From positions 186,248,001 to 186,312,000 of the forward strand of contig NC_067401.1 of the NCBI RefSeq assembly GCF_016432865.1: a stretch of DNA of 64,000 nt, in the 5' to 3' direction. Position numbers and translations under genes: made by a program. Below are positions 6,401-9,400 of this stretch, piece by piece. This DNA comes from Antechinus flavipes (Eukaryota). Each line of letters begins with the position of its first letter. Positions within the stretch are counted from its first letter, which is position 1. The notes beneath the pieces are model-generated. The model ran no database searches, was not told where the DNA came from, and saw nothing but the letters and a program-made list of their open reading frames with translations.

Positions 6401-9400
6401 GGAGGAAGAGCAGCGGCAGCTTGAGATCCTTCAACAACAGCTGCTCCAGGAACAGGCCCTGCTGCTGGTAATGGGGTCCTTCATCCACTACCTTATTTCC
6501 TTTTGGGAAGGGTGGTGGGGTGGACTTCAGGGCTTCTTTGTTTAGAATAAGATGTGGAGACAAAGAAAAAGGTTCCTGTGACTACAGGGGTGAACAACCT
6601 CTCTAGGCATTTGAAAAGAAGAGAGCCTATAGCTTATGTCTTCTTCAGCCTCATAAGGGCATTCCCAATCACTACTCCTTCAGTGCTAAATTTCTTTTTC
6701 TCTTCCCCTTCCATGATACCAGGAATACAAGAGAAAGCAGCTAGAGGAACAACGACAGTCAGAGAGGCTTCAGAGACAGCTGCAGCAGGAACATGCCTAT
6801 CTCAAGTCCTTGCAGCAGCAACAGCTCCAAAAGCAGCAACAGCCACCTACATCAGGAGACAAAAAACCCCTGTATCACTACAGCCGGGGTGCTAACCCTG
6901 CTGACAAGCCAGCCTGGGCCCGAGAGGTACTCTCTAAAGTCCTACTCTGATCCTTTAGGAGCCACCCCATAGGGTCTTCTCTGCCATTCCCTAAAACCCA
7001 GCATCCTTAGAGTCTGATGAAAGGACTGAGGGAGTTTTTGGAAAGGAGCCAGGAACTGAAGAAAAAGGATATAATTTTGGGGGGAATGAGTTGAAGAGAA
7101 CTGAGTTCTGTAACCATAGGGAGAAAGTAAAAAACAGTGGGATTTCATTTTGACAACTGCTGCTACCCATCTCTCCACAGGTAGAGGAGAGGACAAGAAT
7201 GAACAAACAACAGAACTCACCCCTAGCCAAGACTAAGCCAAACAGCACAGGACCAGATCCTATTCCCCCACAAGCCCCTGTTGGGCCTTCTGGGCCCCTT
7301 TCTCCAACCCCACCCATGCAGAGGCCAGTAGAGCCCCAGGAAGGACCACACAAGGTAAGTCTTTACTTTTCCCTACAGAAAGATAGACACACACACACAC
7401 ACACACACACACACACACACACACACACCCAGGAGAGAGATGGCTTCTTTGTTCTCTTGCAGGTAAGTGTATAAGGAGACTTATTCAGTAATACCTATAA
7501 AAACACACTTACAGATGTTTCTATGTACTTTTTCTGCCTCTGTCATTTTCTTACACAGTAAATACCAAGAGTCCCAAGCTATCAAAAGAGCAATTTAGAA
7601 GATGGAGGAAGAGGAAGAGGAGGAAGAATAGAAGCTAGAGTTCCTACCCTAGGCTCATTCATTATTCCTTGGAGTTTGGATAAACCATAAAGGTTTTTTC
7701 CCCTCATCCCCTATTCTTTTCTTGCAGAGCCTTGTTGCACATCGGGTCCCACTGAAGCCATATGCAGCACCTGTGCCCCGTTCTCAATCCCTACAAGATC
7801 AGCCTACTAGAAACCTGGCTGCCTTCCCTGCTGCTCATGATCCTGACCCCACTGCCCTCCCACCTACTGCTACTTCTGCCTCTCGTGGAGCCATCATCCG
7901 ACAAAATTCAGACCCCACTTCTGAGGGTCCTGGCCCCACACCAACACCCCCGTCTTGGAATCGAGCAGACAGTGAGGCACCACCTAAGGTAAGTATTGCC
8001 TTGAAGCTAATTCAGCACTCTTTTCCAGAGAATGGAATATAAATAAATGGAATAAAGATGAGAAGAATGGAGGGAGGGGAGATAGGAAGTGAGCAAGAAA
8101 GAACACAAGAAAAAAGTAAGAAAAATGGAAGGTGGAAGGAGGTCCTAAGGAAGAATATACAGATTCATTTGGCTCAGTCTCTTTCCCCTCCTTCCTTTCC
8201 TGTCCTTCCTCTGGTACTTCTTACAATTCTACAGGTACCCCAGAGGACCTCATCTATTGCCATTGCCCTTAACACCAGTGGAGCTGGAAGTTCCCGACCA
8301 GTACAACCTGTCTGTGCCAGGTAATAGCCATGTTAGAACAGACTAAGGGATGGGATATATAGGATATACTATTTCTCACTTTGGGATGGAAGAGCCCTAG
8401 CCTATCTAACCCAGCCTCCCTCGACCCCCAGCCACTCCTGTGCTCCCTTCCTTCACAGACCTCAAAACAACTCCACCTAGCAAACCTACCTGCAAACTCA
8501 GGCAGAGTGGGTGATCCCTGGGCCTCCAGGGTCCCCCTCTCAGCCCCCCAGCTCACCCAGCACCAGTAGATAATGGCATTGTCACCCCATTAATTCTCAC
8601 TATATGGTAATGTTCACCCCACCACGGGTTCCTAAACTTTCTACTTTTACAAATTGAGGTAAGGGAAAATTGACTCACTAATTCCTCTCCTGACCCCTAC
8701 ACATCTGCCATAGTAACCCAGACCTTCGAAGGAGTGAGCCAGGCTGGGAGCATGGAGATAGCCTCCTCCAGTCCCATGGCCACCTACCACAGGCTGGCTC
8801 ACTAGAGCGCAACCGAGTAGGAGGTGAGGCCCCTAAATTTCCTGTTGATGGGGGAGGGATGAATAGCAAGAAAGAGGTGGAGGGTTGTTGTAAGAATAAA
8901 GTATAGATAGTGAGATGACAATCATGGGAATTAAAAATAATAGCCATTTCCATTGTTAACAGGTTTGTTTGTGCCAGACACCATGTAGCAAAGACCTAGG
9001 CCTATCTTAGTTTTCTAGGCTGAAGCAGATACATGGATAGTTATGGGAAATGAGATCCTATATTATCCTCTATGGGGCTGGGAAAAGTTGTGGAAGCTTA
9101 TTTAAACCTTATCAGTGATTGGGATGATTGAGTTAAAACAGAGTAATAGAATAGAGAGTAGTTATCCCCCTTTCCCACCTTTCCTTTCCCTCTCCTTTCT
9201 TCCCATCTCTCATCTCCAGCATCTTCCAAGCTGGACAACTCTCCCATCCTGTCTCCAGGGAACAAAGCCAGATCTGATGACCATCGCTCTAGGCCTGGCC
9301 GGCCTGCAGTGAGTAATCTTGTTGGCAAGTGCTGCTCTCCCAACCAACAGAGCTTGAGGAGTGCAACATGAGATCTGCTGAACTCTTGGGAGCGAGTAAC

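Follow-up and report, generated by a model that had tools for sequence, protein, structure and literature searches.

A decayed alternative exon of MINK1 in a marsupial: probable trace of an old, lineage-specific exon loss

In a 64,000-nt window of the genome of the marsupial Antechinus flavipes (contig NC_067401.1, positions 186,248,001 to 186,312,000 of the forward strand; all positions below count from the first letter of this window), we identified the remains of a 111-nt alternative exon of the kinase gene MINK1. The corresponding exon of human MINK1, exon 18, is alternative: neural tissue skips it and stomach includes it (PMC3022918). In epithelial cells, ESRP activates it (PMC6788855). 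In the window this exon has lost its donor site and carries an in-frame stop, and we regard it as probably a fossil, left when the exon-18 cassette of MINK1 died long ago in a single lineage. The elements on which this reading turns are listed here with the two exons that flank them. A slash marks the exon-intron boundary, and donor scores come from a simple position matrix, under which the real MINK1 donors of the window reach 5.1-12.5 (the weak ones 5.1-6.9).

8235-8320, plus strand: MINK1 constitutive exon upstream of the cassette (exon-17 equivalent), ending GCCAG/GTAATA with 2 nt of a split codon
8406-8458, plus strand: 3' splice-site region of the dead exon, with a branch-like CTAAC (8406-8410), a pyrimidine tract and CAG (8456-8458)
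8459-8569, plus strand: pseudo-exon, orthologous to human exon 18, the MINK1 cassette of 111 nt and 37 codons, with a frame that is otherwise open and no indels relative to placentals
8478-8480, plus strand: in-frame TAG, 19 nt into the exon; TGG (Trp) in four placentals; a G>A change, not at a CpG
8570-8571, plus strand: AT at the donor position; GT (TAG/GTAATGG) in four placentals; a G>A change; donor score -4.25
8714-8823, plus strand: MINK1 constitutive exon downstream of the cassette, with a peptide ending LERNRVG and an omega of 0.05-0.09 against placentals

The cassette was compared with MINK1 on genomic contigs from four placental species other than human (L001/L002, L004/L005, L030/L031 and L032), which were reached through open reading frames (ORFs) called on public Logan contigs. 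Human sequence was not used; the exon-c and exon-f peptides of the contigs differ from the human protein, and none of the contigs was taken to be human. Matches carried by many contigs (P0031, P0033, P0050) were left out as possible human or laboratory contamination; comparisons of exon a were made from position 7781 onward only. An earlier note on this DNA had matched the 111-nt exon codon for codon with the human 37-residue alternative exon, and the homology was borne out against all four placentals, to which the whole exon can be aligned gaplessly with 73-76% identity. Its coordinates for the exon, the stop, the donor AT, the acceptor CAG and the CTAAC, as well as its arithmetic, all hold. 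The introns flanking the cassette reach only 38-54% identity with several gaps, and the conserved block coincides with the exon and its splice-site flanks. All four placentals are intact, with a cassette reading RPRSNSAWQIYLQRRAERGTPKPPGPP.Q.PGPPNA., TGG at the tryptophan codon and the full donor; both lesions of the window are single G>A changes. Against placental contig L001, 18 of the 36 codons differ. The cassette has accumulated 17 amino-acid replacements, whereas among the four placentals only codons 27, 29 and 36 vary. On these alignments, the homology of the cassette and its lesions is far beyond chance. With exon 18 of human and mouse MINK1 it shares the same flanking exons, position, length and phase, and a gapless, codon-for-codon alignment. 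It differs in the stop at the tryptophan codon and the missing donor GT, while the placental exon is nearly invariant and regulated.

The lesions sit in a sequence that has ceased to evolve like a coding exon. Relative to placentals, the cassette has a nonsynonymous divergence (dN) of 0.29-0.30, a synonymous divergence (dS) of 0.31-0.44 and a ratio of the two (omega) of 0.66-0.95, compared with a dN of 0.07-0.13, a dS of about 0.9-2 and an omega of 0.05-0.13 in eight neighbouring MINK1 exons. Its differences fall almost evenly on the three codon positions (9:10:8), that is 19 at positions 1 and 2 against 8 at position 3, whereas the neighbouring exons show 62 and 148, respectively (Fisher p=5.6e-5). 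Between two distant placentals with a pooled dS of 0.51, the cassette has a dN of only 0.013 and a dS of 0.156, which places it among the best-kept parts of MINK1; only a handful of its bases vary among all four species. The branch leading to the window is too long for the cassette, with 27 against 5 all-site differences, compared with 210 against 107 in the neighbours (p=0.046). Judged by these comparisons, the divergence shows a cassette under long relaxed constraint and not a slip of assembly.

The direction of change can be read from the CpG sites. Placentals have six CpGs in common in the cassette, none of which is kept in the window, where all are TG or CA; the constitutive exons keep 10 of 15 shared CpGs, and the contrast is significant (p=0.012). 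Five of the six lost CpGs lie at positions that change the amino acid (Arg>Gln, Arg>Gln, Arg>Trp and, twice, Ala>Thr), and G>A or C>T account for 13 of the 24 fixed differences in the cassette. This pattern is what methyl-CpG decay leaves when nothing opposes it, here on the lineage of the window, and the reverse direction would be hard to obtain. The loss of the long isoform in this lineage, which the earlier note had offered as one of two outcomes, is well supported by the two lesions, the relaxed constraint and the complete CpG decay, set against a placental exon that is nearly frozen.

To date the loss, we used a model with a constrained rate from the placental pair, a neutral rate from the synonymous sites of the neighbouring exons and a split 160 million years ago; it is rough, as it assumes equal rates on both lineages and ancestral CpGs. 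The substitution excess then corresponds to a relaxed period of 19-112 million years, with its centre near 60, and the loss of all six CpGs in less than 20 million years has a P below 0.01 for the decay rates tried. We infer that the loss is old, dating back some 20-110 million years (centre about 60). After tens of millions of years without coding constraint, related marsupials should therefore share it.

Searches for the cassette and its surroundings in other genomes gave little. A word search of ORFs called on relatives' contigs found no match to the antisense ORF at 8272-8556 or the exon-b ORF at 8058-8321, and for the exon-f ORF at 9711-9890 the ORFs on relatives' contigs gave only placental matches, at 82% identity or less. 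An exhaustive representative search with the query 13378-13695 returned fragments only, with no full-length MINK1 and no marsupial among them, and the sauropsid-like or GC-rich contigs (L008-L013) all end before the cassette. Of two DNA-pattern scans of metagenomes, one gave no match and the other 16 chance matches lacking a MINK1 context.

In the ancestor of marsupials and placentals, the intermediate domain of MINK1 would have included an alternative cassette of 111 nt; on the lineage of this marsupial, the cassette would have stopped contributing to the protein and then drifted. The change of the donor from GT to AT abolishes exon definition at the ancestral 5' splice site, the conserved tryptophan codon has turned into TAG, about half of the codons have changed their amino acid and every CpG has become TG or CA. 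Because the donor is lost, the tryptophan codon is a stop and codons and CpGs have decayed, MINK1 would here make only the form without the 37 residues. As read from the exon ends, the 8320>8714 join creates the codon AGT (Ser) and keeps the frame; the short isoform should therefore be intact. The acceptor, still good, would be used at most at noise level together with new downstream GTs, giving transcripts with premature stops that nonsense-mediated decay (NMD) would remove. The lineage-specific disappearance of alternative exons has been reported as frequent (PMC2231371). As in the known losses, a splice-site mutation and a nonsense mutation disable the exon in one lineage and drift follows; nothing essential differs here, where the lost exon preserves the frame, is very strongly conserved in placentals and seems to have been lost long ago. 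In evolutionary terms the event is ordinary and the gene well known, as is the process behind it. The supplements of a mammalian splicing atlas (PMC8187152) do not mention MINK1.

Several points nonetheless weigh against an old loss of the exon. Both lesions are known from assembly letters alone, in one individual, and the absence of the 37 residues from the mRNA is read from those letters and not from RNA. The direction of change is argued from CpG decay and mutation bias, without an outgroup, and neither the protein collections nor the metagenome scans yielded a cassette copy from a relative among marsupials, a monotreme or a sauropsid; the protein collections likewise gave no marsupial transcripts. 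The lack of any indel in 111 nt fits drift (P about 0.3, a rough estimate) but would also fit some continuing use. The same holds for the acceptor flank, which is better kept (19 of 21 bases) than the body of the exon (about 75%), as neutral drift would allow (P about 0.14, also rough) and continuing use would too.

The earlier note had described the acceptor as intact, and this is confirmed: the pyrimidine tract upstream of 8459 is 88% C/T over -20..-5, the CAG is in place and 19 of the last 21 aligned bases match placentals, with one 4-nt insertion. By a rough Poisson estimate, this conservation is not significantly in excess of drift. The branch-like CTAAC is likewise present, but it is not conserved in placentals. 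Downstream of the lost donor lie two donor-like sites.

8604-8612, plus strand: cryptic donor-like ATG/GTAATG, with GT at 8607-8608 and a score of 5.2; no GT at the aligned placental position
8656-8664, plus strand: strong donor-like GAG/GTAAGG, with GT at 8659-8660 and a score of 10.4; absent from the four placental contigs

Splicing from the donor at 8607 would make the exon 148 nt long, bring in a stop and a frameshift and leave a downstream intron of 107 nt, lengths that had been calculated correctly before. The site at 8659 is of consensus grade and had been overlooked; its use would give a 200-nt exon and leave only 55 nt of intron before 8714. Neither 148 nor 200 is a multiple of three, and any exon that starts at 8459 brings in the TAG. 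Rfam, promoter and terminator scans of the region showed nothing relevant.

These signals raise the alternative that the exon has become a poison or a decoy, an explanation that we consider unlikely. In one version, the acceptor at 8459 would pair with one of the new donors and insert a 148- or 200-nt segment with the TAG, leading to NMD; in the other, the acceptor without a donor would stall splicing so that the 393-nt intron is retained. Either route would tune the dosage of MINK1, perhaps in the epithelia where ESRP once activated the exon. The strong acceptor and its placental-like flank speak for a poison or decoy exon, as do the two GTs that placentals lack (the score at 8607 lies within the range of weak real donors) and the fact that inclusion would put a stop far upstream of many exon junctions. 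On the other hand, the ancestral donor is dead, the 148-nt version needs a donor that is new to the lineage and only moderately good, and the donor at 8659 leaves an intron that is short for a mammal. The acceptor is not kept significantly above neutral expectation, the body of the exon has drifted freely, exons that have decayed but retain some splice signals are mostly inert, and a regulated function has a low prior. In RNA runs of related organisms, no more than 0.14-0.17 of the 31-letter words sampled from 8150-8900 occur, about the worth of the two flanking exons. For intron retention, intron words of 8150-8900 are present in small runs of unknown kind, which could mean a retained intron if these runs are RNA. 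Two of them, X4 and X42, are very small (111-118 million letters) and hold 67-83% of the sampled words, introns included; they fit targeted capture or RNA with a retained intron, and not shotgun DNA. Decoy exons promote intron retention as exon-like intronic units that engage the splicing machinery without being included, and the unit in the window can be likened to them; described decoy exons, however, keep both splice sites and are conserved, and this unit shows neither. Poison exons coupled to NMD are found, among others, in SR-protein genes. Like SCN1A exon 20N (bioRxiv 10.1101/2020.06.21.163428), the window has a cassette with an in-frame stop and a well-kept acceptor between coding exons. 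Known poison exons, however, possess two functional splice sites, are observed in RNA and, within the lineage using them, usually show high conservation, whereas in the window the donor of the ancestral exon is gone, its body has drifted and the unit has been met in genomic sequence only. That evolution has retained the dead exon for a regulatory role, with its acceptor and the donors at 8607 or 8659 producing stop-containing or intron-retaining MINK1 transcripts in the tissues where ESRP once activated it, is a distinctly unlikely outcome.

The exon could instead have been born in placentals: the therian ancestor would have had mere intronic sequence here, with TAG and AT, the TGG and GT would have arisen on the placental side, where the sequence was recruited as an exon, and its marsupial counterpart would never have been one. 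Without an outgroup this costs two changes, the same as a loss, and a 36-codon frame with a single stop is not unusual by chance (estimated at about 0.5). Birth is nevertheless quite improbable: without any past constraint, the sequence should resemble the flanking intron, with its low identity and gaps, yet a gapless block of 73-76% identity matches the exon and its splice flanks. The low dS of the cassette (0.31-0.44 against about 1.1) also implies constraint along much of both lineages, and six CpGs would have to be gained in placentals instead of six lost here. Alternatively, the animal may truly have TGG and GT and a working exon, and the assembly or its consensus may be wrong. All sampled words of 8150-8900 (100%) are present in run X1 (organism A), which may be the sample behind the assembly; the share is 0.56-0.83 in further samples and in organisms B and C, and 0.23-0.30 in organisms D, E and F, in counts that are not position-specific. 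For an error, two independent substitutions would have to fall, within 92 nt, on the two positions where they do most damage, and it is very unlikely because some 25 other differences (17 of them replacements), like the loss of all CpGs, agree with the two lesions in showing long relaxed constraint. Finally, the long isoform might still be made through rescue at the RNA level, by A-to-I editing of UAG to UIG (Trp) and of the donor AU to IU, or by U12-type AT-AC splicing. Both lesions are G>A, the sole type of change that editing could reverse, and UAG is a favoured ADAR context. The A of the donor is preceded by G, which ADARs disfavour, the region lacks a stable fold (z -1.18), and neither 8479 nor 8570 is involved in an inverted repeat. 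For U12-type splicing the donor reads ATAATG instead of ATATCC, and the downstream intron ends in TAG (8711-8713) and not in AC. The protein sequence has drifted anyway, and the chance of such a rescue is negligible. We also looked at an alternative reading frame, an idea put forward for MINK1 (PMC1868773), and set it aside: both other frames of the cassette contain a stop in the window.

In and beside the MINK1 gene that contains the dead cassette, the following further features were located.

390-560 and 988-1164, plus strand: Pkinase matches, in kinase exons near 390-1160
7728-7988, plus strand: MINK1 exon
9220-9308, plus strand: MINK1 exon
9549-9572, plus strand: MINK1 micro-exon of 24 nt, SYKRAIGE
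9705-9871, plus strand: MINK1 exon
15766-16011 and 16687-16896, plus strand: CNH matches, in CNH-domain exons at 15.4-18 kb
24-29 kb, minus strand: ORFs with Neur_chan_LBD and Neur_chan_memb, belonging to a nicotinic-receptor gene that lies tail-to-tail downstream of MINK1

By domain order, synteny and exon orthology, all of which agree, this gene is MINK1, the GCK-IV or misshapen kinase next to CHRNE. The same arrangement of MINK1 and a nicotinic-receptor gene is found on placental contig L001, ten exons align to placentals with an omega of 0.05-0.24, and a relative of the exon-f ORF carries the JGI name 'misshapen/NIK-related kinase'. The exon just upstream of the cassette (8235-8320) aligns to the placental contigs without gaps at 83-85% identity, with a dN of 0.098. 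Its dS is unusually low, at 0.40-0.56 against about 1.1 in the neighbours, and between two placentals at 0.13 against 0.51, which suggests that splicing-regulatory sequence is overlaid on the coding sequence. If the cassette is exon 18, the micro-exon at 9549-9572, three exons downstream, would be exon 21. MINK1 exon 21 has been described only as included in neural tissue (PMC3022918). A 27-nt inverted repeat (9397-9423 and 9527-9553, 74% complementary) overlaps the acceptor of this micro-exon with its second arm, and could form a structure that gates it. Elsewhere in the gene, the 78-nt intron at 13480-13557 is free of stops and in frame, so that ORF 13351-13860 runs through it and its retention would add 26 residues to an unbroken protein, and the intron 3' of exon 7199-7357 contains a perfect (AC)21 microsatellite (7387-7428).

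Annotators should take the probable fossil as a warning against carrying the placental exon over into gene models of marsupials. Were the dead exon kept for regulation, a switch between protein isoforms would have turned into a dosage switch in marsupials. If the loss is real and old, marsupials would live without the epithelial, ESRP-dependent long form of MINK1, whose sequence in placentals is conserved nearly to the base, and would represent a natural knock-out of one isoform. This suggests that the 37-residue insert is placental-specific in function, or that marsupials compensate for it by other means.

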